A stretch of DNA of 64,000 nt from Macrostomum lignano (Eukaryota), in the NCBI GenBank assembly GCA_002269645.1, contig NIVC01002622.1:91491-155490 (forward strand). Reading direction: 5' to 3'. Under the pieces are notes generated by a model that saw only the letters and a program-made list of their open reading frames with translations, had not been told where the DNA came from and ran no database searches. Below are positions 9,701 through 50,200 of the stretch, one piece after another (the stretch's first letter is position 1; each line of letters starts with the position of its first letter). Made by a program: the position numbers and the translations under genes.

Positions 9701-12700
9701 TTAGTCTCAACGGACATCATGAAGAGTGCCCCGAAATCTGAAAATTCTGGGATAATGAGCATTGGAATGTTAAAATCGTCATCAAAACCGCGGATCAAGG
9801 GAGTGAATCGACAACAGTCACAGACTCAAAGCTCATCAAAATGCTCGCGCTGTGGAACAAGCCACGGAAAAGACGCGTGTCCAGCTTATGGAAAGACATG
9901 TCGTAAGTGTGGGAAGCAGAACCATTTTCAGAAAATGTGCCGCTCAAAGTTTGTTGTCCCGAACCAGAAAAACACAGCTGCAGTTCAGCACTTAGACGAG
10001 CACTCGCAGTCAGATCATGTCTTCATGGTTGGTGCAACTTCAAGGCAACCTTTGTCTACGGATGCAGTCGCAGTGACCCTTGACTTCATATCATCAAGTG
10101 ATAAGGTATCAATTCCGTGCCAGGTGGATACTGGGGCAGCAGTTTCAGTTATGTCTGACCGGGTCTGGAAGCAAATCGGCACCCCTGAACTGCAGCCTAG
10201 CAGCATCACTTTGACAGGATATACCGACGCGCATCAATTCAAAATGTTGGGCCATTTCATCAGCAAAGTGAGTTACCAAGGAAAAGTGCACCGAATACCA
10301 TTCAAAGTGGTTCGTTCTGATCGATCGTTTGCTCTACTCGGCAGGGACATTTTGACCATAGAAATAGATTTCAGCAAGGCTGATGGAAGCGAAGCGACTA
10401 GAGTATTCAGAGCGAGACTAGAATTGATTCCGGATGCTCAGCCAAAGTACATCAAGGCACGGTCGATCCCTTTTGCCTATAAAGATCGATTGAAAGATGA
10501 GATTGACAAGTTGCTAGCTGAGGGAATCATTGAGCCAGTGACTTTTTCTCAATGGGCCTCACCAATTGTCATCGTTCCTAAGGCTGATGGTAGGCTGAGA
10601 CTCTGTGTGGACTACAAGCAAACATTGAATCCACAGCTCATGAAGGACAGTCATCCAACACCGACCCCGGAAGAAGCTTTCAGTACAGTAGCAGGATGCC
10701 GAATGTACACCATCTTGGACTTAAAAGCAGCGTACAACCAGGTGGAATTGGAGGAGGACTCAAAGCCTCTCACGGTCATGTCTACACCTTTCGGCAACTA
10801 CCAGTACAACCGTCTGGTGTTTGGGATACGGACTGCTCCGAGTATTTTCCAGCGCTACATCAGTCAGGTCATACAGGATGTTGATGGTGCAATTGCCTAC
10901 GTCGATGACATTTTAATTGGTGGTGAGTCAGAGAAGCAGCTTAAGGATCGTGAGAGTCAAGTGCGAGAGCGTCTGGAACAACATGGCCTCAAGGTCAACG
11001 AAGAGAAATGCCAGATTTGTCAGTCTCGGGTTCGCTTTCTCGGGTTTATCCTGGACAATGGCATGATCCTGCCCGACCCGGAGAAAGTGAGAGCCCTGCA
11101 AGAAATGGAGACTCCCAAGACGATGGCAGAACTAGAATCGCTCATCGGACTCGTCAGGTTCAGTGGCTGGTTTGTGCCCAATCTGTCGCACTACCTGGAG
11201 CCGTTGACTCGATTAATGCGCGGCAGAAGAGAATTCCAATGGGATTCTGAGCAAGATGAAGCTTTTCAGCGTATCAAGTCCATGCTGACAGAAGATTCAG
11301 CTCTGGCTAATTACGACCCCAAGAAACCTGTGGCTCTGGAGTGTGATGCTTCCCAAAAAGGACTGGGCGGAGTTCTGATTCAAGACAACAGACCGGTTTT
11401 GTACATCAGCAAAAGGTTATCAGAAGCCGAGAAGAAGTATTCTCAGATCGAAAGGGAGGCCCTTGCAATTGTCTGGTCAACTCAGAGGTGTCAGCGGTTC
11501 TTAGCGGGACGTCATTTCAAGCTGATCACGGATCACAGACCATTAACCTACATCTTTGGGCCGAACGAGGGCTTGCCTACGCGCGTATCAGCACGCCTTC
11601 AAAGATGGGCCATATCGCTAATGGCTTTTGACTACACCATCGAGTATCAACGGTCGCAGCTTATGAAATCAGACGCTCTGTCCCGGTTGCTTAACAACGA
11701 GACGGCTCGGACGTATACAATCGGGAGCATCCAACTACCCTCAACGATCATATCCATTCAAGAGGTTAGAGACCAATCACAGGATTGCCCAGAGATCGTT
11801 CTGTTAAAAAAAGCCATCCGGACGAGCAACTTTAACGACCCGAGAATCCGCCCCTACAAGGCAGTCGCGGACGAACTGACGATCGAGTCGGACGTGGTAC
11901 TCCGGGAGATGCGAGTCATTCTTCCAAAGACGTTGCGGTTATCGGCAGTCCAAACGGCACACAGCACACATCTAGGCATTGGCCGAACCAAGTCACTGTT
12001 AAGAGCACAATTTTGGTGGCCCGGCTTGGATCGAGATGTAAAACAACTCATCGGAAATTGCAAGACGTGCAAAATGGTCAAGGCTAGCAATCGAAACTAC
12101 CTAAAATCTTGGCCGACAGCAATGGACGCTGGAGAGCGCGTACATGCGGATTTTGCGGGTCCAATAGATGGCCAATATTTGTTGGTGCTGGTGGACGCCA
12201 TGTCGAACTACCCTGAGGTGCATCTGACCGCCAACATGGAGTCATCTACAGTCATCTCTAGGCTACGGAGAACTTTTTCGCAGTGGGGTGTGCCAAGGAC
12301 ACTTGTCACCGACAACGGCCCAAGCTTCGTCTCAGCTGAAACAACACAGTGGCTGAAAGCAATCGGGTGCAGCCATGTGACCACACCTCCATATCACCCT
12401 CAGAGCAACGGACTCGCAGAGAGATTTGTCCGCACAATGAAAGAATCTGTGTCAGCGTTGGGTCTGAGTCAACACAACATTGACAAGTTCCTACTGTTCT
12501 ACCGATCATCCAAAGGAAACGATGGTCGCACACCGTCGGATAAGTTTCTAGGTCGAAACATCCGGACTCCTTTGATGACAGAGTTTTCTGGAGATGACAA
12601 TGTGGTGTACAGGACACAAGGAGCTACGTCACTAGCCAGAATCGTCCTGCCTACAGGCCGCAACACGGCAATCATCAAGCTTGAGAACGGCTTGTACAAG

Positions 12701-15088
12701 AAGGCTCACAGAGACCAGATACAGAGCTTCAAGGGCAGCGATGACAAGGACGTTGGCCCGGAACAAGCTACCACTGGTGCTGCTGGTGAGGTCGATCACC
12801 CTCTAGCTATGCGCCCTGGAGAAGAGGAGCGGGAGCAGCAGCAGCAGCAACCCAGAAGAAGTGAAAGACTGAGGAACAGACCGACTGTGAATTATAAGGA
12901 GTGAACTGTAATTTTGAAGCAGGGAGGTGCTGCGGGCTGGCTTCTGCCCGAGCAGATTGAACTTTAATTTGTAATTGCCATAGACAAGTTTATTTGCCTG
13001 TACTGCGATTAGTTGGCGCAAGTGTCAAAGAGCCTTCGTGACAAAAAATAGAAATACATAAGTATTCAAGAAGACTCTGATAAGAGCAACGGCTGCAAGA
13101 GCCGAGAGTGCACGGCACACAACTTGCGTAAATATAACGCAATACAAAAGACAGACTTGTAACACGTATGACTGCGTACGTATCCGCGCGCTTGTGTGCC
13201 TGCTCAGGGGAGTCGGCGGAATTGGCAGCAATGCCTCTCGCCGGTTGTGCGACAATGTCGCTCAAGTGCGCTAGGGTGCACACAGCCTTCTGGCAAAAAA
13301 AGTGGCAGGTTCCTTTAGACTTGTAGGAATATTTTTCGGGATTGCAGAAAGGTTTTGAGATCCCAGTATTCGAATATCTTAGTGAATGTGGAAGTGACCA
13401 TTAACTTAATGCATGTAAAATTTGAAAAGACACCCGTTTTTCTTTCAAGAGTAAAATATCTGACCCTGGAAATGGGAAAGTTCATCCTTCGGTTTATTGA
13501 AGGAATGCAATACCGAGTTTGGCTAAAGGTCAAACCTGCATGAGCCAGCGAGGCGACTCAACCACGTAGAAGTGGGCGAGCAGCAGCAGCAGGGCCGGGG
13601 CCGAGATGACCAGCTCGAGGTATCGCCAGTGCTGAGTTACGTAGGCTGCGCCGGTTAGCAGAAAAATTCCTGCACTCCAGCCCTGCAAGTAGTTTATTGG
13701 GTGTTTGTAGGTAATTGCGGAGTAACTCGAAACTGCACTGTTACACGTGGATGTGCAAAATGTCTTCGTGTACAGTAGGTAGGTGACGTTTTTACGGAGA
13801 CAATCAGACTGGGTTTACAAAGACATCAGACTGGGTTTACACAGACATCAGACTGGGTTTACACAGTCATCAGTCTGGGTTCACGCAGTCATCAGACTGG
13901 ATTCACACAGTCATCAGTCTGGGTTCACACAGTCATCAGTCTGGGTTCACACACTCATCAGTCTGGGTTCACACAGTCATCAGTCTGGGTTCACACAGTC
14001 ATCACACTGGGTTCACACAGTCATCAGTCTGGGTTCACACAGTCTTCAGGCTGAGTTCACACAGTCATTAGACTGGGTTCATACAGACATCAGACTGGGT
14101 TCATACAGACATCAGACTGGGTTCATACAGACATCAGACTGGGTTCATACAGACATCAGACTGGGTTCACTGCTTGCCCTGTCGATTTTTGCTTTTATTT
14201 GCGCCAGTGACCGAAGCCGAGTTAATAACTGGCAGGAAAAATTTCCTCTCTCACCTGCTTCATTAGCATAGTAAAGAGGAACCTGTGCCTGCTGTGCTGC
14301 ATCTCGGTGTGCCAGGCGAAGCACACAGTCAGCAGACCGGAGGCCGCGAAGCCGGTCACGAAGCGGAACACTGCGTAGGCGGCCACCTCCTTGACGAAGG
14401 CCGCGATGACGCCGCCGACAGCCAGATTGACGCAGGCCAACAGGTAGGCGTTGCGCCGGCCCCACCGATCCGACAAAATCCCATAGCTTGTGCTGCCAAA
14501 TAGGAAGCCGAGCATAAACATCACCTTGACAACCGTTGCTATGGGTTCCCAGCCACAGACAAGACCGAACGATTCCGTCACAGTTTTAGACATCGGGTCG
14601 GAGCTGTTGAAGAGAAAGCGCTGGCAAGGTATTCCGGCTGCAGAAGGAACGCTGCCGTTCTGAGTCGCCTCTGGCGCCGATGTCGGACCGGGAATCTGAC
14701 AGCTGCTCAAGTTGGACACCGAGGCCCAGTCGATTGAAGCTGCAGCTGAGGAATTATTCGAGCCGAAACCGGTGGCGCAGACGAACGGGCGTCTCAGCAT
14801 GGTGAAATTCACCGAGTGAATCTGCATCGACGGAAACGCGACAGCCAGCGCGATTGTGACCATGAAGGCGGCCTGGTACTTGTGTCGCCGGCCCACCACG
14901 TTCATGTACTCGTCAAATGTCGGCTCCAAGCTGCCGCCCGACATCAGAGACTCCATCGAGCCGGCTGTCCGCTTCAATTGGTGCTGCTCAACTTTATCTA
15001 AGTCGTTTCCTTCTTCATCATCGTCCTCGTCCGCTCCATCTAGCTGATCTTTGATCTCGCCGACAGCTTGTTTTACAGGCTCCTGCAT
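6721..15088 (-). CDS. SLC22-family organic cation/anion MFS transporter; exons 15088-14255, 13682-13536, 8500-8151, 7468-6721 (692 aa)
   Basis: Spliced frame continuous (phases 0,0,2); motifs [51 protein letters not shown]. Confidence 0.92.
7530..7955. repeat. 21-bp minisatellite in SLC22 intron 3
   Basis: Tandem GCACAGGTGACACTCACTGAT / TTACAGG units. Confidence 0.97.
8817..13164 (+). mobile_element. Complete Ty3/Gypsy (Mag-like) LTR retrotransposon, 4348 bp, in SLC22 intron 2, antisense to the host gene
   Basis: 237-bp TG...CA LTRs (8817-9053, 12928-13164) identical by eye; TSD CGTAT (8812-8816, 13165-13169); likely PBS TGGCGTCGC.. from 9055; PPT AGGGAGG 12921-12927. Confidence 0.97.
9071..12904 (+). 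CDS. Single-frame Gag-Pol polyprotein (1277 aa)
   Basis: Tandem zinc knuckles CSRCGTSH..C / [14 protein letters not shown]; protease VDTGA; RT YVDD; RNase [17 protein letters not shown]; integrase HHCC and [19 protein letters not shown]. Confidence 0.97.
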   Translation: MKSGVKQPSATDKSPASPLKHAKMVVMADAEAQSQPIKGSDGPARAVAGAMEIERLELGNNYSRWLDRFTIVAKFYRWDSTAKAQMLLMRLPTALYDTLADQASPKKPSELSYSEIETALTSILVPATFVLAERYSFQLCSRKSGESVRTYAERVLKAAEKCEFINKDERLRDQFICGLADQNVIGKLLVKDHLRLSFKEAVAEAEAHSALVSTDIMKSAPKSENSGIMSIGMLKSSSKPRIKGVNRQQSQTQSSSKCSRCGTSHGKDACPAYGKTCRKCGKQNHFQKMCRSKFVVPNQKNTAAVQHLDEHSQSDHVFMVGATSRQPLSTDAVAVTLDFISSSDKVSIPCQVDTGAAVSVMSDRVWKQIGTPELQPSSITLTGYTDAHQFKMLGHFISKVSYQGKVHRIPFKVVRSDRSFALLGRDILTIEIDFSKADGSEATRVFRARLELIPDAQPKYIKARSIPFAYKDRLKDEIDKLLAEGIIEPVTFSQWASPIVIVPKADGRLRLCVDYKQTLNPQLMKDSHPTPTPEEAFSTVAGCRMYTILDLKAAYNQVELEEDSKPLTVMSTPFGNYQYNRLVFGIRTAPSIFQRYISQVIQDVDGAIAYVDDILIGGESEKQLKDRESQVRERLEQHGLKVNEEKCQICQSRVRFLGFILDNGMILPDPEKVRALQEMETPKTMAELESLIGLVRFSGWFVPNLSHYLEPLTRLMRGRREFQWDSEQDEAFQRIKSMLTEDSALANYDPKKPVALECDASQKGLGGVLIQDNRPVLYISKRLSEAEKKYSQIEREALAIVWSTQRCQRFLAGRHFKLITDHRPLTYIFGPNEGLPTRVSARLQRWAISLMAFDYTIEYQRSQLMKSDALSRLLNNETARTYTIGSIQLPSTIISIQEVRDQSQDCPEIVLLKKAIRTSNFNDPRIRPYKAVADELTIESDVVLREMRVILPKTLRLSAVQTAHSTHLGIGRTKSLLRAQFWWPGLDRDVKQLIGNCKTCKMVKASNRNYLKSWPTAMDAGERVHADFAGPIDGQYLLVLVDAMSNYPEVHLTANMESSTVISRLRRTFSQWGVPRTLVTDNGPSFVSAETTQWLKAIGCSHVTTPPYHPQSNGLAERFVRTMKESVSALGLSQHNIDKFLLFYRSSKGNDGRTPSDKFLGRNIRTPLMTEFSGDDNVVYRTQGATSLARIVLPTGRNTAIIKLENGLYKKAHRDQIQSFKGSDDKDVGPEQATTGAAGEVDHPLAMRPGEEEREQQQQQPRRSERLRNRPTVNYKE
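13800..14165. repeat. 22-bp minisatellite in SLC22 intron 1
   Basis: Tandem GGGTTCACACAGTCATCAGTCT units. Confidence 0.95.
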
Positions 15089-23600: not shown

Positions 23601-26600
23601 CCACACCTCTTCACTCCGAACCCCCTCACTCCGCACCCCCTCACTCCACACCCCTCACTCTACACCCCTTCAAGGACAAGTAGTTCTTGCACCCCTTCAC
23701 TCCACATCCCCTCTCTCCACACCCCTCACTACACACCCCTCACTCTACACCCCCTCCCTTCACACCCTCTCACTCCACACCCCTCACTCCACACCTCCTC
23801 ACTCCACATTCCCCACTCCACACCCCTCACTCCACACCCCTCACTCTACACCCCTTCAAGGACAAGTAGTCCTTGCACCCCTTCACTCCACATCCCCTCT
23901 CTCCACACCCCTCACTACACACCCCTCACTCTACACCCCCTCCCTTCACACCCCTCACTCACACCTCCTCACTCCACATTCCCCACTCCACACCCCTCAC
24001 TTCACACCCCTCACTCACACCTCCTCACTCCACATTCCCCACTCCACACCCCTCACTTCACACCCCTCACTCACACCTCCTCACTCCACACCTTCTCACT
24101 CCACATTCCCCACTCCACACCCCTCACTTCACACCCCTCACTCACACCTCCTCACTCCACATTCCCCACTCCACACCCCTCACTTCACACCCCTCACTCA
24201 CACCTCCTCACTCCACACCTCCTCACTCCACATTCCCCACTCCACACCTCCACTCCGCGACCCCTCACTCTACACTCCCTACTCTACTGCAGGCACGCAT
24301 CGGCAGGCCTCACAGAGCGCAGTCGGCGCAGCTTGGTCCGCCTCATGTACAAACTAGCTCTGGAAGGCATCGATCTACAAGCCAGAAACGTCGCCGGAGA
24401 CACCGCCTTGCTGACTGCGGCCAACCCGACTTCGGCGATGCCGTCGGCCTCCTTGGCAACTCTTCCACCGGACCGTCAACTACTGGAACATCTTCTTCGC
24501 CTGGGCGTCGACGCGGGACTTCGCGGAGCCGGTGGTCGCGGTCTGGCCTCGTCTAGCTTCGGTCCCGACCTCCGACTGCAGCGAGGCGGCTGCCCGCGTT
24601 TTCGGGTGCCGGGACTGACAGCGGCGGTCCGCGACGCCGACGTCGGTCGAGTGCGTCGCTGGTTGGCGAGCCTTGGCCGTGTTGAAGCGGTCAGCAACGG
24701 CAGGAGCCTCCTTCAACTGGCAAGGGAAGCTGGTGGCGAGGTGGCCCGTCTGGTGGAGGCGGCCAGGCAGACGACGGAGTTCGCTGCGGCGGTGATGGCC
24801 GGAGATTTGGTTGCCATGCGGCGATGGCTGGCGATGGGCGGCGCAAATCGACTCGTCAACGCCTGGTTCCGGTAAGGGACTTTAATCTCTGAGGCAGAGC
24901 AGCTCAGCCTTTAGAGAGTCTGACTTTGCACCAGAGTACCCAAAGTATTAATTTGGGACTTGTGCAGGAATATTGGATTGGGGCTTGACTTTCTATGTCG
25001 CCCATGAGGCCCAACCTCCCAACCTACCTACAAGAGTTTGTTCATGCCTAACAATGAAAAGCCATGGCAAAGTCGCTGACAGCACAACAGGTCGTTTGGA
25101 CGGGCATCTAGGGCTGCGATGGTGACTTGCTCGTTGCTGATTTTGAAGGCGTCGTGCAGCAAGACAGCCTCGAACAACTCCTGGAACAAGGCCGCCCTCT
25201 GGCGGCCTTGAACTGAAGAAGGCAACTCAGGCAAGCCCGCGACGATGCCGCAGATTTTCGTAGACGCTGGACAACAGACCACCCGGATTAACGAACTGCT
25301 GACATCGACAGGCGCACACACTCGATGTTTTGTAGACACCGACACCCTGGACTCGGTCGGCTTGCCCTGTGGCGCTGTTTTCATAAGACCTGACAGCGTT
25401 TATTTTGTTTTTTTTGTAGACCCGTGCCTGCGTTCGAATGTCCGTGTGCGCGTACTCTGGGATCAGCAGAATAGTCTCTCCTGCTTCTTATCGCTAAGTC
25501 GGCTTCGGCACTCCTTCTGCAAGCTAGCAAACACTCCCAACAACCTTAAAATTATGGGTTTTTATCTAGCTACCTCTACCTCATAGCTTACCTACACCAT
25601 CCCCATCCGCCTCATTCCTGCTCACCCACTCACCCGCCTTCAGCTTCCACTTCGTTGGCCTCAGTACAGACGGCCTGACCCCTGAGTTCGCCAACCGCCC
25701 TTTGCTCGCCGCAGCCGTAGAGTTCGCCCCAGCCAGCGTTGTCGACTGTCTGCTTCGCTTTGGAGCTCGTCTCGACGTCCAGTGCGAGGAGAGACACCCC
25801 TGCGGCCCGGCCGCTTTCTGGGCATTCAACGACGCGCCGTTTGGTGCGGCCGTAGGCGGGACGGCCGTCGCCGAAACCGTAGCCGCCTGGGCCGACGCTC
25901 GGCATCTCAGAGACGAGCTCGGGCGCACGCTTCTGCATGCAGCCATCGAGTGGCGCGAACTCAACGATGAGGAAACGTCGTCAACGCCTAACTCAGAAGA
26001 TTTAGCATCGGGGGCTAAGTCGCCTGCGCCTCCAGCGACTCTATTACAATCGAAATCGTTTCATTCAATGCTGAACTCAGTTCGGCCTGAGTCTTCGCTT
26101 AGACGGTGCCTCAGATCGACGTCATTTTACACGTCGTCTAAAGTGCAACCGTCCACCGAGTCCAAAGTGCAACCGTCCACCGAGTCCAAAGTGCAACCGT
26201 CCACCGAGTACAAAGTGCAACCATCCACCAAGTCCAAAGTGCAACCATCCACCGAGTACAAAGTACAACCGTCCACCGAGTCCAAAGTGCAACTTTCCAC
26301 CGAGTCCAAAGTGTCGCTGTCAGAGGCCAGACATCGAGTTATTCGCCGTCTGTTAGCACGAGGGGCACCGTTGGCCGCTCGCGACGCATCAAGTCGAACA
26401 GCTCGAGACTTGGCTAGTGCCGTCGGTGACTTTGAAGTCTGCCGCCTGCTCGACAATCACGTGACCGAGTTGGCCCGTCGAGGCGATCTAGACAGCGTCG
26501 AGCAACTGATTCTCGAAGCCTACGACGCAGGTTTCGACGGCGCCACGGCGTTAATCGCCGCTCGGCGCCACGATCGCGATCTGCTGCGCTTGCTAGGCGA

Positions 26601-27788
26601 GACGCCGCGCTACCGGCGCCAAATCGCCGCGCTACACGCATCCATAGCCACCGGAGGTGCCGTCGCCGCTGCTGCTTTTGCTCGATTTGCCGGTGAGAAA
26701 CGGCTGGCGCTCGGCTTGGACCGACGTGGCCGCAACCTCCTGCACGCCGCCGCGCTGTCCGGCGACGCCGCACTGGCCGGCTCCGTGGCCGAGCGGCTTC
26801 CTGCGCTGGCTGGACAGGGCGACTGTCTGGGTCGGACACCGGCGCACTATGCGGCTTGTCTGGCCGACTCGAAAGCGACGCTGTCGGCAATTTCTCGAGC
26901 GATCGGCGGTTTGGACATGTCGATTAAAGATGCCGTGAGGATTTGCGATTGACTTCTTTAGTAAACTGTCTATATATGCTCTCGACGAGTAGCAAGTGGC
27001 GTTATTAGTCAGGTTGAGTGAAAAAACTGATGGCTTTATTATGACTCTAATATTCAAATTGGGCGCCCATTTTTTCAATTGGACACCTATGTATCTCTTA
27101 TCTGGGCGCCCCAGTGTTTAAGTTCGGCGCCACTGTGTCTGAATTGGGTATACCAGTGTGTCTGAATTGGGTACACCAGTGTGTCTGAATTGGGTATACC
27201 AGTGTGTCTGAATTGGGTATACCAGTGTGTCTGAATTGGGCGCCACCGTGTCTGAATTGGGCGCCACTGTGTCTGAATTGGGCGCCACTCTGTCTAAATT
27301 GGGCGCCACTGTGTCTGAATTGGGTATACCACTTGCACTGTCTGAATTGGCGTCGCCCTCGTAGAAATAGGCTGCTTATACTACTTTCTGTAAGTAGTAA
27401 AAGAGTTTCTTCCAGAAAAGAAACTGAATGCCAATACAAATTTTGCAGAACAATCTCAGCGTATTTGACTATCTAGAGCAGATGGATCGGCCAACACCGA
27501 AAAAACTGAAGTCGCCAAGCAGAAGAATACTTAATTATCAGGTAAGAGTGACTTCATTACGCTTGTATAAAGCTTTACTTTTCTCTAAACCTAATTATTA
27601 GCGTTTTAAATCTGCCTAAACCTGCTTAGGTTAGAGATCTAATAGACATCGAGCGGAGAGCTACAGTTTCAGTTGGCCCAGTTATCAACGAAATCGCTGC
27701 TGCGTCAACCGAAAACGACTCCGAATCGACTGACAGCCAAAAGGCTGACACAGACTTGCCTATGATTCGCATCGATATCGTCGATTGA
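20699..27788 (+). CDS. Large multi-exon ankyrin-repeat protein; exons about 20699-21037, 21344-21462, 22552-22770, 23109-23258, 23369-23543, 24293-24871, uncertain exon near 25.1-25.35 kb, 25644-26934, about 27482-27541, 27630-27788; apparent -1 frameshifts in exons 1 and 2
   Basis: Ankyrin motifs GCDVNGQNLAGNTALHMAC, VDVDCIDEETGDTYLHCVV, GIDLQARNVAGDTALLTAA, DELGRTLLHAA, DRRGRNLLHAAALSG, DCLGRTPAHYAA; most splice phases consistent. Confidence 0.78.
22312..22510 (-). mobile_element. tRNA-derived SINE-like copy
   Basis: B-box GGTTCGATTCC (22447-22457, minus), then GCCACATTCATTT, GGGCCAACCCCCAAGGC and the hairpin shared with other copies. Confidence 0.65.
22885..23050 (+). mobile_element. Second tRNA-SINE-like copy in ankyrin intron 3
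   Basis: B-box-like GTTTCGAGTCC, GGCCACATTCATTT, GTGTAC..GCCTGACGATTAGAAAGTC..GTACAC, GT-rich tail. Confidence 0.6.
23590..24290. repeat. C-rich degenerate repeat (CCCCTCACTCCACA-type) filling ankyrin intron 5
   Basis: Includes an approximately 186-bp higher-order duplication ending in AAGGACAAGTAG. Confidence 0.93.
26140..26307 (+). repeat. In-frame coding 24-bp minisatellite (KVQPSTES x7)
   Basis: Seven AAAGTGCAACCGTCCACCGAGTCC-like units inside the 25644-26934 exon. Confidence 0.93.
27110..27355. repeat. 21-bp minisatellite GTGTCTGAATTGGG(TATA/CGCC)CCA
   Basis: Tandem units. Confidence 0.93.
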
Positions 27789-31057: not shown

Positions 31058-31879
31058 GGTAACTGGTTGGTTTTTGGATATCTAAAATTGGAATTCGTCA
31101 GCATGGAGCAGCAAAGTCGGAGGGTGGTCGGTTCGGTTGGTCACCCTAATTTGGGGTTTCTCAAGATACATTCCGGGTCAAGAAACGCACAATGCGTTAC
31201 ACACTAAGCTGACAAATATCAGGCTGCAAGCACAACCGTTGTGTGCGTCCCTGCACAGGAATAGGGTAAACAAGATTAACAAGGTTAACAAGATTTTAAC
31301 TTACCTTACTGATGAAAATTTAAGGACCTTGGGGCTTAAGAAGTGTTTAAAGTTAACAGTTTTTTGTCGCATGGAATTTTATCTATTCGGTTTCGAATTT
31401 CCAGGGCACGATGAAGAATATTATTTGATGCGCATCTACCCAAGTTATAGTTTTATTTATACTGTCGGCTAGGACGAGTGGTACCACCCCCTGCCGTGCG
31501 CGAGCTACTACTAGAGACTACACGCTCAGCACAAGCACAATAAGCTAACTGATTCTGCGCTGACAGACGCAGATTCAAGAGAATTTCCCAAGCAAACAAT
31601 GCCGCGAGATGAGAGTCCACTGACCACGCGCTGAACAATAGGCCATGAGTGAAATTTACTGACCCTGGCGAAGTTGCTTGCTAGAAAGACGAGGGCTTTG
31701 CTTTTCTTGGAAAACTCTGTTTTGCCAGGCATTTCGCTCAGGGCGTAAATGACACATTGCAGGTTGTTTACAAGAATCTGGACTACAAACTGCTCCTAAA
31801 ATAACTCTGCAAATTATTTACAACCAAAGTGCCGCTCGAAAATGCAGGCTTAATCAGTGAGTTCATTACAGTGAGGCCT

Positions 31880-33128
31880 CTCCATTTCTCACCTGTGATG
31901 TGTCTCCATTTCTTAGCTGTGATGTGTCTCCATTTCTGACCTGTGATGTGTCTCCATTTCTGACCTGTGATGTGTCTCCATTTCTGACCTGTGGTGTGTC
32001 TCAATTTCTGACCTGTGATGTGTCTCCATTTCTGACCTGTGATGTGTCTCAATTTCTGACCTGTGATGTGTCTCCATTTCTGACCTGTGATGTGTCTCAA
32101 TTTCTGACCTGTGATGTGTCTCAATTTCTGACCTGTGATATGTCTCCATTTCTGACCTGTGATGTGTCTCAATTTCTGACCTGTGATGTGTCTCAATTTC
32201 TGACCTGTGATGTGTCTCCATTTCTGACCTGTGATGTGTCTCAATTTCTGACCTGTGATGTGTCTCAATTTCTGACCTGTGATGTGTCTCAATTTCTGAC
32301 CTGTGATGTGTCTCAATTTCTGACCTCTGATGTGCCTCCATTTCTGACCTGTGATGTGTCTCAATTTCTGACCTGTGATGTGTCTCAATTTCTGACCTGT
32401 GATGTGTCTCAATTTCTGACCTGTGATGTGTCTCCATTTCTGACCTGTGATGTGTCTCAATTTCTGACCTGTGATGTGCCTCCATTTCTGACCTGTGATG
32501 TGTCTCAATTTCTGACCTGTGATGTGCCTCCATTTCTGACCTGTGATGTGTCTCAATTTCTGACCTGTGATGTGCCTCCATTTCTGACCTGTGATGTGTC
32601 TCAATTTCTGACCTGTGATGTGTCTCAATTTCTGACCTGTGATGTGTCTCCATTTCTGACCTGTGATGTGTCTCAATTTCTGACCTGTGATGTGTCTCAA
32701 TTTCTGACCTGTGATGTGTCTCAATTTCTGACCTGTGATGTGTCTCAATTTCTGACCTCTGATGTGCCTCCATTTCTGACCTGTGATGTGTCTCCATTTC
32801 TGACCTGTGATGTGTCTCAATTTCTGACCTGTGATGTGTCTCAATTTCTGACCTGTGATGTGTCTCAATTTCTGACCTGTGATGTGTCTCCATTTCTGAC
32901 CTGTGATGTGTCTCAATTTCTGACCTGTGATGTGCCTCCATTTCTGACCTGTGATGTGTCTCAATTTCTGACCTGTGATGTGTCTCAATTTCTGACCTGT
33001 GATGTGCCTCCATTTCTCACCTGTGATGTGCCTCCATTTCTGACCTGTGATGTGTCTCCATTTCTGACCTCTGATGTGCCTCCATTTCTGACCTGTGATG
33101 TGTCTCAATTTCTGACCTGTGATGTGTT
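31880..33128. repeat. 24-bp minisatellite, about 50 copies
   Basis: TTTCTGACCTGTGATGTG(T/C)CTC(C/A)A; generates three long spurious ORFs. Confidence 0.98.
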
Positions 33129-33459
33129 TTAATTGATTGGTAGCAATTCCAAGAAAACCCATCAAGACACCAAATATTGGCGCCCCCTAGGGTTGCGGCC
33201 CTCACCAGTTAAAAACTATTGCGTACACAACTACATCTATCCTTAAAAATTGTGATGCATGTCGTCTGTCCCTCCGAATATTGATTCTCGATTTCTACAT
33301 TATACCGTATACAGAAACATACCGGTTATAACCTGGGTCATTTTTTAAACTACTATAAACAGTGCGAAAGTTAAAAAGTATGCCAAAAGTCAAGTGTACA
33401 CGTACTTTATTTACTATAGCTGTTTACACCTGACTGGAGTTTGAACGAGCAAATTACAA

Positions 33460-41220: not shown

Positions 41221-44200
41221 TCACAGCTTCGACCTTGACAGCCAGTCGAATTCCTGAAATTGATGGACAGAATTTAGTTAGGGCATGCATGAGGTGCCAA
41301 GCAGTCGCTCTTGGCCAAGCGGACGAACACGTACGAAAGCACTGCCGCTCACGCAGGGTGTTACAGCGGCCATGGCCTTCTCATAGCATGACAAGCTACA
41401 TTGAGTACTTAGCTGCTCAGCTGCAGGAATTGTGAGACAAAACTGCAAAATGACTCAACATTCAGCAGATTGTTTGCGACACAAGTTAAGCAGAGCTGGC
41501 CGTGGTTAGTACAAAGGCGGCCATAGCAGTTTCTCACAATCCAACTGTCAGGAGGGGGCAGTTGACCCCCATCTAACTGCTAGGAGAAGGGCAGTTTCCC
41601 CCATCTAACTGCCAGGAGAAGGGCGGTTTCCCCCATCTAACTGCCAAGAGGGGGGCATTTGCCCCCATCTAACCGTCACGGGGGGCAGTTTCCCCCATCC
41701 AGCTGTCAGGAGGGGGCAGTTGACCCTCATCTAACAGCCAGGAGGGGGCAGTTTCCCCCCATCTATCTACCAGAAGGGGGGCAGTTGCCCCCATCTATCT
41801 ACCCGGAGGGGGGCAATTGCCCCCATTTATCTGCCAGGACCCCATCCAACTGTCGGGGGGGGGCAGTTGTCCCCATCCACCTGTCGGGGGCAGTTGTCCC
41901 CATCCAACTGTCGGGGGGGGCAGTTGTCCCCATCCAACTGTCGGGGGCAGTTGTCCCCATCCAACTGTCGGGGGCAGTTGTCCCCATCCAACTGTCGGGG
42001 GCAGTTGTCCCCATCCAACTGTGGGGGGCACTTGTCCCCATCCAACTGTGGGGGGCACTTGTCCCCATCCACCTGTCGGGGGCAGTTGTCCCCATCCACC
42101 TGTCAGGGGCAGTTGTCCCTTCTATGCGGTGCCATCACCTGCTGCTTGCGCTCCGCCCCAGTATCGATGATGGCGTTGATGAGGCAGGGCCGGTCGCGAA
42201 CCCCGGCGAACTCCGCAAACGCCTGGCGCAGTTCGCCAACGCTGCGCACCAATCGGCCGTAGCCGCCCAACGCTTCGGCAGCCAAATCGTAGCGACACTC
42301 CGAGGTTAGCGACGTCGCCGGCAGACGAAGGGCAGCCGACGCCGACAAAGCACCGGATGAAGGCGCGGCGCCGTCCTGCTGGAGCAGCTGGCGAAGGACA
42401 TCAGCCGGCACGCCGGAATAAATTCCCGAATTGTTTATGACAACCAGCAGCACGGGCATGCGATAGCGGGCCAGGGTTTCCAGCTCTGCTAGGGAGAACC
42501 CGACAGCTGAGTCGCCTTCCAGGCACAGAACTCGACGATGACCAACTCGAGAGTCGCCGATGCACAGGTCGGCGGCGGCGGCGAAGCCGAGACCGACGCC
42601 CATCGTACCGAAGGTGCCGGCGTCCTTGAAAAGCGAGGAATGGAGTTTTGACCAAGATAAGGATTTTTGGGTGCCAGAGTTCAAATGGGGATTTTTGGGT
42701 GCCAGAGTTCAAATGGGGATTTTTGGGTGCCAGAGTTCAAATGGGGATTTTTGGGTGCCAGAGTTCAAATGGGGATTTTTGGGTGCTAAAGTTAAAATGG
42801 GGATTTTTTGGTGCTAAAGTTAAAATGGGGATTTTTTGGTGCTAGAGTTCTCGGGTTTGCTAACTCCCAAATGGGGATTTTCAGGAGTGCTAGATCTCAG
42901 ATGGGGATTCTTGTGTGTGCTAGATTCCAGATGGGGATTTTCGGGTTTGCTAGCTTCCAAATGGGGATTTTCAAGAGTGCTAGATCTCAATTGGGGATTT
43001 TCGGGTTTGCTAGCTTCCAAATGGGGATTTTCAAGAGTGCTAGATCTCAGATGGGGATTTTCGGGTGTGCTATTGATAGATCTCAGATGGGGATTTTCGG
43101 GTGTGCTAGATTCCAAATGAGGATTTTCAGGTGTGCTAGATTCCAGATGGGGATTTTCAGGAGTGCTAGATCTCAGGGTGGATTTTCGGATGTGCTAGAT
43201 CTCAGATGGGGATTTTCGGGTGTGCTAGATCTCAGATGGGGATTATTGTGTGTGCTAGATTCCAAATGGGGATTTTCAGGAGTGCTAGATCTCAGGGGGG
43301 ATTTTCGGGTGTGCTAGATCTCAGATGGGGATTTTTGTGTGTGCTAGATTCCAGATGGGGATTTTCGGGTATGCTAGATTTCAGATGGGGATTTTTGGGT
43401 GTGCTAGATCTCAGATGGGGATTTTCGGGTGTGCTAGATTCCAAATGGTGATTTTCGGGTGTTCTAGATTTCAGATGGGGATTTTTGGGTGTGCTAGATC
43501 TCAGATGGGGATTTTTGGGTGTGCTAGATCTCAGATGGGGATTTTCGGGTGTGCTAGATCTCAGATGGGGATTTTCGGGTGTGCTAGATCTCAGATGGGG
43601 ATTTTCGGGTGTGCTAGATTCCAAATGAGGATTTTTGTGTGTGCTAGATTCCAGATGGTGATTTTCGGGTGTGCTAGATCTCAGATGGGGATTTTCGGGT
43701 GTGCTAGATCTCAGATGGGGATTTTCGGGTGTGCTAGATCTCAGATGGGGATTTTCGGGTGTGCTAAATTCCAAATGAGGATTTTTGTGTGTGCTAGATT
43801 TCAGATGGGGATTTTCAGGTGTGCTAGATCTCAAAGGGGGATTTGTTGGTGTGCTAGATCTCAAAGGGGAGATTTTCGAGTGTGCTAGATCTCAAATGGG
43901 GATTTTTTGGGATGCTAGATTTCAAATGGCGATTTTCGGGGCGCTGGTACCAAACATGGATTTAGGGTATTTAAACAGAGTTGAGCTTTAAATTTAGAAA
44001 TATCGATAGATGACGAGAGTCGAAGCTCTTCTGATGAAAGGAAGAATGTAATCTAAGGATTGGCGAAGACAATAACTTCACATAAATTAAAACAAATAAA
44101 TCGCCTATATGTATCGATAAAACAGTTTGCGGATCTACCAAAATCAATTAATAACAAAAGATATACGCAAATAACTAACCAGGCGCCTACGCGCCAAGCG

Positions 44201-47200
44201 ATTAGGCAGCATGGCCCGCCCAATGTCCATGGTGTTGGCGCCCTCGCTAACAATCAGCCAGTCGTCGCCGCTATTGTCAACAAATTTTGCTAATTCGTTC
44301 AGCGCCGAATAATACGTCATGGGCACGGTTTGGCCCTCGACAATCAGAGCGTCGACCCGGGCTCGATTCGCGGCCGAAGCGGCGTTGAGTTCGCGCCACC
44401 AATCGCTGCTAGAAGAGAATTCGAAGCCGTGCAGCTCGGATGACAACTGGAAGATCAGATAAGTTTATTGTATTATGCAATAATTAACGCTATCTATATT
44501 TTTGCCACAGTTTTGAATGAAAAACTTTAAAAAAGTAAGATTACCTGCTCAACAACAGCTGCCACACTGCCGCACAGGGCGACTTCGCAGGTGACATTGG
44601 TGTGAAACTCTTCAGGATGGATGTCCACCTATTAGGAGAGATAAAAAAACGTTCCTTACTTTGGGAAAAAATCATTTCTCCTAAATCCAAGGTAATTTAT
44701 GAGCATTTAATTTACAAGGAATAGATTAATCCAACAAGTAGAATAGAAGAAAACGTACTGCTGAGTACGATCAAACCGGACCAATAAAAACCAAGCGTTA
44801 GAAATTGTCTTTCTTAGTACTCATTCGCAATGCAAATGCGTGCGTACAAAAATTATCAGCCTTCTTACACCCCTGAAAGTAAGTAAGTACATTGATTTAG
44901 TTTGGAATGGGGGGGTTGGGGCGGGTTCTTTATCGTCGGAGAGAGAAGAGAAACGAAGGGTTAGGGTTGATAAGGCGACGAGGCTAGAGGCAGCAGCCAG
45001 ACAGGACTATCGACCAAGTGGGGAGGCGGGTGGGGGGTGGGTCTGATGGGTAGGAAATCTAGGGGTCTGTGAACGTACACTCCAACCCCCCCCCCCCCTC
45101 AAACACTACGCCTTGTTCTCGCCCCACTCATCCACCCACCACCCAAAACCAACCTACAGTACTGACTCCGCAAGCTCCCACAAAACACACAAAGTAAAGG
45201 CAAAACTGGGCAAGATACAAATCCAGTTTGGACAAGAAGCAGTTTAACTTAGAAATAAGTTCCGCTATATTACTAATACGCAGTAATGGTGAAATGCGCT
45301 GTACTAGGCTGCGGCCTGATGGGCTGCAAGATTGCTGGCGAGCTAGCTCGTCAAGGCCATCGAGTCAAGATGACGGACAGCAATGCAGAGGTATTAAATA
45401 GCGCTTATCAGCGTATGGAAGAGGACAAACAGGAGCTGCTTCGAGAAGGCCTACTGATGCAAGGCGCCTTTCCAGGCCAGGTGCTTTGCCTGTCCCGCCT
45501 AGAAGAGACCGTCTCGGATGCCGAATTCATATTCGATGCTGTGCACGATAATTTGGATACGAAATCGGACCTATTAGAAAAGGTTAGTCACGTGTGCCAG
45601 CCGGAGGCAGTGATCAGCACCAACACTTTGCATCTGGATGTTAACGAAGTGTTTGCCAGGTGCGCCAAGAGGGAGAGATGTCTTGGCCTGCGATTCTTAT
45701 TTCCTGTCTACTATATCCCGGAGGTGAGTCGGTTGGGACGTGCTCAAGTTATGTCAGTGTCATTTCTCATAATATAATATACGTCATGCTGACAGTGTGA
45801 TGGTGTCAGATGGGTCATGCTGACAGCAGGTGACAGATGGGTAATGCTGACAGGTGTCAGATGGGTCATGCTGACAGGTGTTAGATAGATCATGCTGACA
45901 GCAGGTGTCAGATGGGTCATGCTGACAGTGTGATGGTGTCATGCTGACAGGTGTCAGATGGGTCATGTTGACAGGTGTTAGATAGATCATGCTGACAGCA
46001 GGTGTCAGATGGGTAATGCTGACAGGTGTCAGATGGGTCATGTTGACAGGTGTTAGATAGATCATGCTGACAGCAGGTGTCAGATGGGTCATGCTGACAG
46101 TGTGATGGTGTCATGCTGACAGCAGGTTTCAGATGTGTTATGCTAACAGGTGTCAGATGGTTCAGACTGAGTCAGGTGTTAAAGCTAGATGAAAAATGGG
46201 TTAACAAAAAAACAACTCAACAACAGGTTGAGATTAATCCAAGCCGAGACACCTCCTCAAGCACTACGGAAAGAGTTCGCTGCCTCCTAGAAGACATGGG
46301 CAAGACTTTGTTCTTTCGCAGCGGCGGCAATCCGCTGATTCTAACCGAGGAGCAACGCGAAGAGAGACGCAGAGTGGTGCTGGAGCAGCTGCACAGGAGC
46401 TCGGGCTTCGGCAGGGCTGAACAGGCCAACAGTGTACCAGCTCTTGGCTGGGGCGGCGGCGGTGGAGGCGGCGGCTACCATCACAGTCAACAGCTGCACC
46501 AGGTGCACCAGGTGCAGCAACAACAACTGCAACAGTTGCTTCAACAGCAGCAGTCTGAGTGCGCCATCTGCTTGGATCGGGCCAGAGACTGCCTGCTGTC
46601 GCCGTGTCACCACCTGGCACTGTGCTGCACCTGTGCTCAGCTGCTGCACTCGAGACGCGACTTTTGCCCGGTGTGCCGTCAGCCAATTCAAGACGTTATC
46701 AAGGTTTATCACACCTGACTGAAGCTGGGGTGCGCTAAAGTCTAGTCTTGTAGTTAAAATTCTGTCTCACTGTACATGTAGTAGACTGTGAAGAAGAATG
46801 GTTAAGGACAGGGGTTCGCCGGTCAATTTTAAAGTCCCGTCCATTATTTTTCTTTCTATTAATAATTCAAATTGCCGCGATATCTGCGATACTACTACAC
46901 TTAAACTATAGTTTGTATAGAAGACAGCACTAATATTTTGCTGCGATCTAAAACTGTTATGTTTTTGTTGACCCAACCATAAACATTTTTCTAATGATAT
47001 TTTTTATGTACACGTATGATAACCCTCTCATTTCTCACATGCAGAGCTGGTGGTCAGTAGCACCTGTACACAGACAGGGTTAAATATTTTATTCACTGCG
47101 ATCGATTTTTATCTTCGAAATCTATATACACACACAGGACCCGCGAAATTTGAATCGGACTATGTTCGTTATTTTTTATTATTAATCAGCTTTTAACCAG

Positions 47201-50200
47201 TTTCCTGCCTCCAATGCTAATTCTCTAAACTCTTTTATATCCTACAGAAAGACATAAAACAGACAGTGCATTAGCTAGACTACTCTTGGGCTTTTAGTGG
47301 AGACCCCTGTCTCTTGGGTGGGCACCCCTGTCTCTTGGGTGGGCACCCCTGTCTCTTGGGTGGGCGCCCCTGTCTCTTGGTGGGCGCCCCTGTCTCTTGG
47401 GTGGGCGCCCCTGTCTCTTGGTGGGCGCCCCTGTCTCTTGGTGGGCGCCCCTGTCTCTTGGGTGGGCGCCCCTGTCTCTTGGGTGGGCGCCCCTGTCTCT
47501 TGGGTGGGCGCCCCTGTCTCTTGGGTGGGCGCCCCTGTCTCTTGGGTGGGCGCCCCTGTCTCTTGGGTGGGCGCCCCTGTCTCTGGGTGGGCGCCCCTGT
47601 CTCTTGGGTGGGCGCCCCTGTCTCTTGGTGGGCGCCCCTGTCTCTTGGGTGGGCGCCCCTGTCTCTTGGGTGGGCGCTCCTGTCTCTTGCTGGGCGTCTC
47701 TGTTTCTTGGTGAGCCTTCCTACTTCTATTACTATGTCGGTGGATGCCACGTTCAAAGAGCTGCCGTCATTAATATAGCCTTAGTTTTTACCTGAATAAA
47801 TTTGACATCCGGGGTCCAGCGAGGCGGCCGGCCAAAGTGCAGGATCCAGTTGAGCCTGGCGCCCAGCAGCACTACCACATCGGCTTGCTTCAGCGCCCTA
47901 GTCCGAGCGGCCGACACGCAGCCTGGATGATCGTCCGCGGCAACGCCCTTGCCCATGGGGGTCGGCAGGAAGGGCAGCCTGGTTGATTGGATAAGCTGGC
48001 GAACTGCCAGCTCCGCTCTGCCCTGTGCGGCGCCCTTGCCAATCACCACGAGGGGCCGACGGGCGGAGCGAAGCAGCCGGGCGGCGGCTGACACAGACTG
48101 GGGATCCGCCAGGGTGACCGGCGGCTGCGGCAGCGGCGGAGGGAAGCTGCGGAGGGGATAGGATACCCATGAAAACGGTACCTAGGTCAAAAAGCGTCCA
48201 AGAGTCCTTGCAGGTAAAATAGGAAATAACTGACCCTAGACGGCTCAAAAAACGAGATTTCACGTTACAAGTCGCCTAGAAGTCAATTTAAGGTGTTTTA
48301 TCATCTACGACTCTGAAACGACTCCGGAGCCGTAGAGTCGTATCTGAGGCGTCCTAGAGTCGCTGTAGAATCACTGAGTTGCATCTAAAGCGCATCTGCG
48401 TCAATTTATATATAATAACTTTATTAAGTTAGCGCAAACAACAACGACTATTGAACAACTTTGTTGCGACTGTTACGATTCTACAACTCGCGTGATGCGA
48501 TCTTGACTCAAAATCGCCTCTCGGTGGTTGCATTACAGTCGTTTGAGTCGGCAAAGAGTCGCTAGAGTCATTAGTAAGTTGTTTGCAAAGATTCTTTAGC
48601 GATTGTGGTCACGGTAACGTTTTCAACAGGAAGGTGTTGTGTCGTGTCGACACTGCTCAAGAGCAATCATTTTACTAGGACAGTATTGAAAACAATTTCT
48701 TTACTTTTCTACTACCAGTAGAGTAGCAAATAAAAGTTTCCTAAAATTAATTTTATACACGTAATATTCTACTGTTCTTACTGCAAGTAAAGTATTAAGG
48801 AAATATTTGATGTTAGATGTTTTTCTAGCCCGATTTGTCTATGGCCAAACCTCATTCAGCGATATGTAAAATGCGCTATGCGCTTTGCGATATGCACAAA
48901 TGTAAATGTTTAGCATTATCGTTTTTAATTAATATTTTTGCAAATTTGTTATTTAGTAGAATCTCACTGGATCTCCTCAGAATCAACTGACGACGTAACA
49001 AAATCGCCAGGTAGGTCCAGGTACACAGCACCAGGCCGCCCGTAGGTGGCCTGTTTCACTGCCTGATAGAAAAAGAACATCAAAACTGCAATAAGATTTC
49101 ACTATGAAGGATTTAAACACAAAATCAAACGTAACAAGATCTAATGCGAGAGTCAACCTTGTGCACAAAATGCGGAATTCTGGCAATTGACGGCAGGCGG
49201 GCGCTGAACTTGCAGAACTTGGCTGCAGCCTCCGCCTGCGGAAACTCCTGGAATGCCTCGCTGCCATCCAGGTGCGAGTCGCTGGCGCCGCCGATCACCA
49301 GCACTGGCCTGTGGGGTTTGCGGGCGATTCGCTTAAACCAACGAGTAGGACTTGGGATGTTGCGATGGCTGGCTTGTGCTGCCTCGCTGTTGGCCCAGCA
49401 ACTCGGGATCTGAGAGGCTGGCCCAGCAACTCGGGATCTGAGAGGCTGGCCCAGCAACTGGGGATCTGGGAGACTGGCCCAGCAACTGGGGATCTGGGAG
49501 GCTGGCCCAGCAACTGGCACTCTGGGAGGCTGGCCCAGCAACTGGCACTCTGGGAGGCTGGTCCAGCAACTGACACTCTGAGAGACTGGCCTAGCAACTG
49601 ACACTATGGGAGGCTGGCCCAGCAACTGACACTCTGAGAGGCTGGCCTAGCAACTTAGGATTTGAGAAGTTGTTCCAGCAACTGAGGAACTGGGAGTAGC
49701 AAGCAAAGGCACAATGTTCACCAGCAGTTTTCATTTGCATTGGACAGTCCGGCCAGTGCATGCACAACTCCAGGACCGGAAACCACCAGACAGACTCCTG
49801 GCCTAGAAAATGTTAAAATTTTGTTGGGATTTCAGCGACTGCAAAAGTTATTCTACAGTTAAATCTTGACGATTAGATTTTCGATACATGTATAATTTAT
49901 TACTTACTTCCCAGTAAGATAGCCAATTGCTGATGCAGCATAGGATGCCTGAAAAGTCACAATATTACTGCACAATATTTTCACACAATAACAAATGATT
50001 CACTTGAGTTAAAATAATGGAAACCTACAGACTGTTCATTGCGCATTGCAACAAACTTGATACCGGCAGATTGAAAGGCAACAGCAACCTCTACCACAGG
50101 AATTCCAACTATGCCAAAAGCATATTCAATGCCCTGGAAAGTCAAACAAGGAGTGCAAGATGTATATTTATGTAGCCCAATAAACTGCTGCTGCACAAAT

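Follow-up and report, generated by a model that had tools for sequence, protein, structure and literature searches.

Does a probable RING ubiquitin ligase that carries a catalytically dead dehydrogenase domain still bind, and perhaps read, the dehydrogenase cofactor? This question is raised by a gene of the flatworm Macrostomum lignano, present in the 64,000-nucleotide (nt) stretch of DNA analysed here (contig NIVC01002622.1, positions 91,491 to 155,490 of the forward strand; hereafter the window, whose own numbering is used for all coordinates). The gene encodes a protein of 309 amino acids (aa) in which a Rossmann domain of the 3-hydroxyacyl-coenzyme A (CoA) dehydrogenase (3HCDH) type is joined by a linker to a C-terminal RING. 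The reading that we favour, if only modestly, is that this protein is a soluble RING E3 ligase whose Rossmann domain has lost catalysis but would still bind a dinucleotide, most likely nicotinamide adenine dinucleotide (NAD(H)), and work as a sensor or recognition module.

Gene model and copies of the gene

The gene is read from the plus strand. Exon 1 (45286..45723, 438 nt) starts with the ATG at 45286, four codons downstream of an in-frame stop, and its codons 1-146 specify most of the 3HCDH_N Rossmann domain. A phase 0 intron of 503 nt (45724..46226, GTGAGT...AG) separates Glu146 from Val147, and exon 2 (46227..46718, 492 nt including the stop; codons 147-309) completes the Rossmann domain and goes on through a helix and a disordered Gly/Gln linker to the RING and its C-terminal tail. 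Both exons are in frame and multiples of three, and the joined product is 309 aa long and ends in VIKVYHT. This is exactly the two-exon open reading frame (ORF), with its GT/AG intron, that had been described in a first-pass annotation of the window made from the letters alone, and the motifs quoted there (GCGLMG, MTDSN, TNTLH, GLRFLFP, DAVHD and the VIKVYHT end) were all found. Judged from the sequence, the two-domain observation is real and far beyond chance.

The splice junction falls within the most conserved motif of the family to which this protein belongs, YYIPE|VEI, and splicing rebuilds the motif exactly. Moreover, an intron-less Logan contig (SRR2014689, 1188 bp) has a single ORF for a 293-aa orthologue that includes both domains. 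A shared intron position was also considered as support for the splice and was rejected: the Capitella and Lingula genes have ~8 exons, and none has an intron at Glu146|Val147.

The window protein is 99% identical to the hypothetical protein BOX15_Mlig004889g1 of M. lignano (P0001, 309 aa), from which it differs only by E84D (codon 45535..45537, +) and R165C (codon 46281..46283, +; Arg in the sister copy). The only genomic contig on record for P0001 is NIVC01000106.1. Its locus there aligns colinearly with the window (92-98% DNA identity, many differences in repeat length, indels), and the NCBI model uses the same splice junction with an intron of 765 nt. Since this sister locus is colinear and carries a near-identical coding sequence (CDS), the window represents a second copy of the gene (paralogue, homeologue or haplotype). 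Just 4 of 930 nt differ between the two CDSs (99.6% identity), two of them synonymous and two nonsynonymous. Next to flanks of 92-98% identity, the CDS stands out as far more conserved than the DNA around it, which points to selection. Because only two synonymous differences accompany E84D and R165C, relaxed selection cannot be separated here from chance or sequencing error.

A shorter database model, P0002 (UniRef A0A1I8IFF4, 221 aa), corresponds to the removal of a cryptic GT..AG interval at 46377..46640, which is in frame and 264 nt long; taking it out reproduces A0A1I8IFF4 apart from the two substitutions of the window copy. The deletion would remove the linker together with six of the RING's eight zinc ligands, and P0002 may be either a misprediction or a RING-less isoform.

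Two further observations concern the 5' end and the intron. The sequence TTACTAATACGCAG at 45268..45285 ends two bases 5' of the ATG and resembles a branch point followed by an acceptor. M. lignano uses spliced-leader trans-splicing, and the 5' end of the window mRNA may be a trans-splice site. Within the intron lies a tandem repeat (45802..46164; 24-nt unit, higher-order unit of 172 nt) whose length differs in the sister locus.

Domain architecture and predicted structure

Pfam assigned residues 4-173 to 3HCDH_N (PF02737, E=3.4e-34) and residues 255-303 to zf-C3HC4_3 (PF13920, E=1.2e-12). The C-terminal domain of the dehydrogenases, 3HCDH_C (PF00725), gave no Pfam match in the 309-aa protein even at E<=1. 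The AlphaFold2 model (mean predicted local distance difference test score, pLDDT, of 87.6) is confident for the Rossmann domain and the RING and leaves the linker disordered; block means are at least 92 over residues 1-170 (most 96-98) and 89-91 over residues 171-200. The top Foldseek matches were Hbd, CRYL1 and HADH, over ~186-199 columns covering the N-domain only, with E ~1e-17 and ~2 Å root-mean-square deviation over ~190 residues. The missing dimerisation domain pointed out in the first-pass annotation is consistent with both searches, and its loss is family-wide.

No extension precedes the first Rossmann strand. Past the last beta-strand, AlphaFold2 predicts a single helix (residues 187-204) at the place that the lost C-terminal domain's first helix would occupy. 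Strand and helix belong to residues 171-204 (46299..46400, +), which carry the motif GKTLFFRSG-x-PLIL-(S/T)EEQRE and have Glu at position 187. The linker that follows (residues 205-254; 46401..46550, +) has a pLDDT below 50 over residues 208-238 and contains Gly8 and poly-Gln runs that are present only in M. lignano. It also includes a motif kept in animals, (I/V)-P-x-L-x-H-x-G-N, in which P217 (61/61) and L219 (60/61) form the P-x-L element at 46437..46445 (+), and whose His is Trp in the flatworm. Cnidarian and euglenid linkers also show H-G. Docking of the P-x-L-x-H motif into the old active site was considered and rejected, as the linker stays below a pLDDT of 50 in the AlphaFold2 models of the flatworm and Capitella proteins alike.

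Loss of the catalytic residues and conservation of the cofactor pocket

Residues were compared, in alignment, between 101 family members (60 core and 41 distant) and 14 canonical enzymes, and the equivalences with human HADH (1f0y numbering) were taken from profile and pairwise alignments: Leu115 corresponds to Ser137, Arg136 to His158, Phe139 to Asn161 and Glu148 to Glu170. The catalytic His (Hbd His136) is replaced by Arg136 (45691..45693, +); this position is Arg in 100 of the 101 family members and Gln in the other, whereas 11/14 canonical enzymes have His. In N113-T114-L115 (45622..45630, +), Leu115 replaces the catalytic Ser (Hbd Ser117), and Leu, Met or Ile occupies this position in 100/101 members, compared to Ser in 13/14 enzymes. 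Position 139 is mostly Phe, Tyr or His in the family (91/101) and Asn in 10/14 enzymes, while position 187, equivalent to HADH Asn208 and Asn in 11/14 enzymes, is not Asn in the family. The exception is Glu148 (46230..46232, +), the retained partner of the lost His, which is conserved in 96/101 members and in 14/14 enzymes. The catalytic residues appear to have been replaced once, early, and then frozen.

The first-pass annotation had proposed that catalysis is lost. In support of this, the His-to-Arg and Ser-to-Leu changes are fixed family-wide, and none of the 101 members has the catalytic His, whose retention in active homologues had been named beforehand as refuting the proposal; the retained dyad Glu, however, had been overlooked. 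A third change cited at that time, EAIVE to DAVHD, stands only in part. DAVHD is present, within D84-A-V-H-D88-N-L-D-T-K93 (45535..45564, +), but its first Asp is specific to the window copy: the sister copy, the 101 other family members and 14/14 canonical enzymes all have Glu at position 84.

In the Hbd-NAD+ structure, polar contacts to NAD are made by the GxGxxG loop, Asp31, Glu90, Lys95, Asn115 and Ser117 (PMC11476959). In the window protein the loop reads G8-C-G10-L-M12-G13 (45307..45324, +), and its glycines are present in every family member covering the region. Asp31 at the end of beta-2 (45376..45378, +), an acidic adenine-ribose binder that favours NAD over NADP, is conserved in 93/101 members. 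D88 and K93, the counterparts of the NAD-ribose contacts Glu90 and Lys95, are Glu/Asp and Lys, respectively, in 101/101, and Asn113, a kept NAD contact, is found in 84/101. The contact made by Hbd Ser117 is lost in the family. By this comparison the cofactor pocket is as strictly conserved as in the 14 canonical enzymes, which bears out the earlier suggestion that the cofactor site is kept.

Of the features that define the enzyme family, the window protein has the PF02737 Rossmann domain with its GxGxxG and the dyad Glu, and lacks the His, the Ser/Asn208 and the PF00725 domain. Because these three defining features are absent, it is not, functionally, a 3-hydroxyacyl-CoA dehydrogenase (EC 1.1.1.35/157). 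Profile scores were alike, at 80-94 bits, for FHMPC dehydrogenase, HADH, Hbd, MFP2 and CRYL1, so that, when descent from one parent 3HCDH subfamily was considered, none (HADH, CRYL1 or Hbd) stood out. Since no subfamily is distinctly closest, nothing points specifically to acyl-CoA ligands; the half of the substrate cleft that the C-terminal domain would build is also gone, and the acyl-CoA or lipid sensing proposed in the first-pass annotation finds no support. Near the old active site, the family has invariant motifs of its own, G-L-R-F-L... and G-K-T-L-F-F-R-S-G-x-x-P-L-I-L-S/T-E-E-Q-R-E, which suggest a conserved new interaction surface around it.

The RING domain

The RING occupies 46551..46715 (+), with the C3HC4 ligands C258, C261, C273, H275, C279, C282, C293 and C296 followed by a short tail. 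Its conservation was counted over 61 sequences. The eight zinc ligands are invariant (61/61), as are Arg266, Leu286, Pro294, Arg297 and Ile300; Ile260 is present in 59/61, and the third residue from the C-terminus, Tyr307 in the window protein, is aromatic in 59/61 (Tyr in 41, Phe in 18). In complexes of RINGs with the ubiquitin-charged conjugating enzyme (E2~ubiquitin), the E2 is touched by the Ile that follows the first Cys and by the Pro that precedes the last Cys pair, and the linchpin Arg stands behind the last Cys; in MDM2/IAP-type RINGs, the tail aromatic supports dimerisation and contacts ubiquitin.

The best PDB matches of the RING were MGRN1, MDM2, cIAP1/2, BIRC7, MUL1, XIAP and MDM4, and it aligns with MDM2 to the very C-terminus, with Tyr307 opposite the Tyr of the MDM2 tail. 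It resembles the RINGs of MDM2, the IAPs (cIAP, XIAP, BIRC7), MGRN1 and MUL1 in its C3HC4 spacing, its CPxCR end with the linchpin Arg, its short tail and the aromatic at -3. Unlike in these ligases, the N-terminal module is a Rossmann domain and not a BIR, p53-binding or other domain. The IAP/MDM2-type C3HC4 RING recognised in the first-pass annotation is therefore there in full, with the zinc ligands, the E2-contacting Ile and Pro, the linchpin Arg and the tail aromatic, and because all these sequence hallmarks are kept, the RING should be active and dimeric.

Family and distribution

An initial search returned 87 proteins. Their sources were molluscs, annelids, a brachiopod, nemerteans, rotifers, hemichordates and echinoderms, and nearly all of them measure 280-320 aa, have the two domains and share 40-60% identity with the window protein. 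When 1.84 billion cluster representatives were searched exhaustively with a profile, with taxa taken from cluster look-ups, more full-length members were added from amphioxus, a barnacle, a millipede, a coral, jellyfish and sponges (Oscarella, Sycon), and also from outside the animals: choanoflagellates (Salpingoeca punica, S. infusionum, Barroeca), prasinophytes (Cymbomonas, Pterosperma), the haptophyte Emiliania huxleyi and the euglenid Peranema. A second profile search, seeded with distant members, gained nothing beyond amphioxus sequences and bacterial enzymes of the canonical kind. Vertebrates, insects, nematodes, fungi and land plants were all missing from the nameable matches, which is not proof of absence from these groups. 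The Rossmann-RING architecture occurs in more than 100 homologues, and the family is old and pan-eukaryotic; its mean identity across phyla, ~55%, indicates selection.

These results answer the search for the architecture that the first-pass annotation had called for. It had allowed for unannotated invertebrate homologues; such homologues do exist, but the family extends across eukaryotes and is already in the databases under misleading automatic names. RefSeq calls its members '3-hydroxybutyryl-CoA dehydrogenase-like', 'lambda-crystallin homolog' or 'L-carnitine dehydrogenase-like', and as enzyme assignments these names are almost certainly wrong. Full-text literature searches found no paper on the Rossmann-RING architecture or on a Rossmann-RING sensor, in line with the first-pass annotation, which knew of no characterised protein with it. 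The sequences are already known from public databases, and what is new is the type of accessory domain, not described before on a RING E3.

Three members depart from the usual layout. In P0114, from a metagenomic contig of Logan, the complete Rossmann-RING unit occurs twice in tandem, a natural duplication that fits with a dimeric working unit. The millipede model P0088 has ~185 extra N-terminal residues, and the Sycon protein P0105 has a ~300-residue linker of proline/glycine-rich repeats.

Proposed function and alternative explanations

Beyond domain content, what we say about function is inference from the sequence. In the mechanism that we propose, the RING would recruit E2~ubiquitin and dimerise via its C-terminal tail, bringing two Rossmann domains together, so that RING dimerisation would stand in for the dimer interface that the dehydrogenase has lost. 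The Rossmann domain would be the sensor or recognition module, whose ligand occupancy, possibly its NADH/NAD+ state, would alter the targets or the activity of ubiquitination. More speculatively, the invariant Arg136 beside the nicotinamide site would disfavour the cationic NAD+ form. The NAD(H) read-out is inferred from the conserved pocket alone; redox sensing by the Rossmann domain would be a reasonable reading of it.

Each half of this proposal has its relatives. The protein shares with the 3HCDH N-domain (HADH, Hbd, CRYL1, FHMPC dehydrogenase) the Rossmann-type fold, the GxGxxG, Asp31, Glu/Asp88, Lys93, Asn113 and Glu148, and differs from the enzymes in the changes of His to Arg and Ser to Leu, the loss of two Asn, the absence of PF00725 and the attached RING. 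CtBP, Rex and NmrA/HSCARG are dehydrogenase-derived NAD(H) sensors that act as transcriptional or signalling regulators. They reuse a dehydrogenase-type dinucleotide-binding domain for NAD(H) read-out, as we propose for the window protein, but belong to other Rossmann families and are without a ubiquitin-ligase domain. To our knowledge, DELTEX is the only well-studied RING E3 with an adjacent NAD-binding module. Its RING adjoins a DTC domain that binds NAD+/ADP-ribose (PMC7500938, PMC7615817), and RING-DTC is the closest working precedent for the arrangement seen here. Unlike in DELTEX, whose DTC fold is unrelated to the Rossmann fold, the RING of the window protein is at the extreme C-terminus, and DTC and WWE domains gave no Pfam match in it. 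In DELTEX the nucleotide is a substrate. As a convergent counterpart of this chemistry, the Rossmann domain could present a bound dinucleotide or ADP-ribose-like ligand to E2~ubiquitin; a ribose hydroxyl, on the nucleotide itself or on a substrate modified with a nucleotide, would then receive the ubiquitin, and the Arg136/Glu148/Glu187 cluster at the old active site would position or activate the acceptor. For the window protein we regard this as a very long shot.

Several points weigh against the sensor reading. The loss of the Ser that bridges cofactor and substrate could mean weaker nicotinamide binding. AlphaFold2 shows no confident interdomain contact (predicted template modelling score, pTM, of 0.66), and in its flatworm and Capitella models the conserved linker motif is left undocked. 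Finally, with Asp84 and Cys165, the window copy might be a slightly impaired paralogue. Many pseudoenzymes work as scaffolds, and the Rossmann domain could likewise be only a protein-binding scaffold or substrate adaptor, in which any dinucleotide would be a permanent structural cofactor without ligand regulation. We consider this unlikely, although it is a serious competitor: the invariant surface motifs, including GKTLFFRSG and the P-x-L of the linker, are specific to the family and not found in real enzymes, and sequence does not distinguish a structural cofactor from a regulatory one. Against a mere scaffold, across a very broad evolutionary range the ribose and pyrophosphate contacts are kept no less strictly than in enzymes that work. 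This strict conservation is our reason for thinking that the pocket is in use, even if it would be accounted for just as well by a structural cofactor.

That the domain is still an oxidoreductase, working through an Arg-Glu pair on a substrate that is probably not a CoA ester, in a bifunctional enzyme and E3, seems to us quite improbable. The NAD site and Glu148 are kept, Arg136 is invariant, and some 3HCDH relatives use free hydroxy-acids, among them CRYL1, which acts on L-gulonate, and FHMPC dehydrogenase, two of the best PDB matches; but three of the four residues that touch the substrate oxygens are lost (Ser, His, Asn; contacts from PMC11476959), a hydrophobic Leu, Met or Ile is fixed at the Ser position, and the whole C-terminal domain, which provides half of the cleft and the dimer, is gone. 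The least credible explanation, to which we give next to no chance, is that the two-exon model reflects an artefact of annotation or a pseudogene copy in decay, nested in the intron of another gene. It could draw on the antisense position of the gene inside an intron of a thiamine pyrophosphate (TPP)-enzyme gene, on E84D at an otherwise invariant position and on the model P0002, which drops half of the RING. However, the protein is full length against its orthologues from start to stop and the splice sites are canonical, and we rejected this explanation on the intact frame, the invariant motif restored at the junction, the 99.6% conservation of the CDS, far above its flanks, and the orthologues transcribed as a single ORF.

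If the sensor reading is true, the family would be a widespread and unstudied class of ubiquitin ligases in which a dehydrogenase remnant directly couples ubiquitination to the NAD(H) pool or to a related metabolite. It has probably escaped study because no member was found among vertebrates, insects, nematodes, fungi and land plants, the groups that supply the usual models. The question is directly testable, since M. lignano allows RNA interference and transgenesis and since sea urchins, amphioxus, oysters, Capitella, choanoflagellates and Emiliania carry the family. Note that the misleading RefSeq enzyme names would contaminate metabolic reconstructions.

Genomic context and other features of the window

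The RING gene is nested, antisense, in an intron of a minus-strand gene of the 2-hydroxyacyl-CoA lyase / oxalyl-CoA decarboxylase family (42106..50199, recognised by Pfam TPP segments; best PDB match 8vzd, E=2e-40). The coding segments of this host gene, all on the minus strand, are 42106..42708 (with TPP_C), 44147..44464, 47756..48181 (with TPP_M) and 49984..50199 (with TPP_N), and the RING gene lies between the second and the third; the sister locus has the same arrangement. Synteny with an acyl-CoA lyase was considered as a hint to function and was rejected: the family gene has FMO-like and RLL as neighbours in Capitella, and Rab3-GAP and CAP-Gly in Lingula, all of them unrelated. Because it is not conserved in these two genomes, we read the nesting as coincidence.

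Tandem repeats are found on both sides of the RING gene. Approximately 590 bp 3' of its stop codon, 47304..47710 holds ~20 copies of a 21-nt unit at 95% identity, with long spurious ORFs on both strands. Beside the TPP_C exon, 42650..43940 is a long array of ~30-nt tandem repeats that also yields repeat-made ORFs on both strands (e.g. STPENPHLR, minus strand) and matches itself in many registers when compared with the sister locus.

Elsewhere in the window, 9071..12904 (+) is an intact 1277-aa pol ORF of the Ty3/gypsy type, with protease, reverse transcriptase, RNase H and integrase. It is flanked by segments of an MFS/sugar-transporter gene at 6721..7347 (-) and 14222..15088 (-), and since it lies between these two minus-strand segments of one gene, it is probably a young retroelement in the intron of the transporter gene. 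An ankyrin-repeat coding segment is present at 25702..26952 (+). Finally, 31783..33165 consists of low-complexity repeats with long ORFs on both strands, which gave spurious Pfam matches only.

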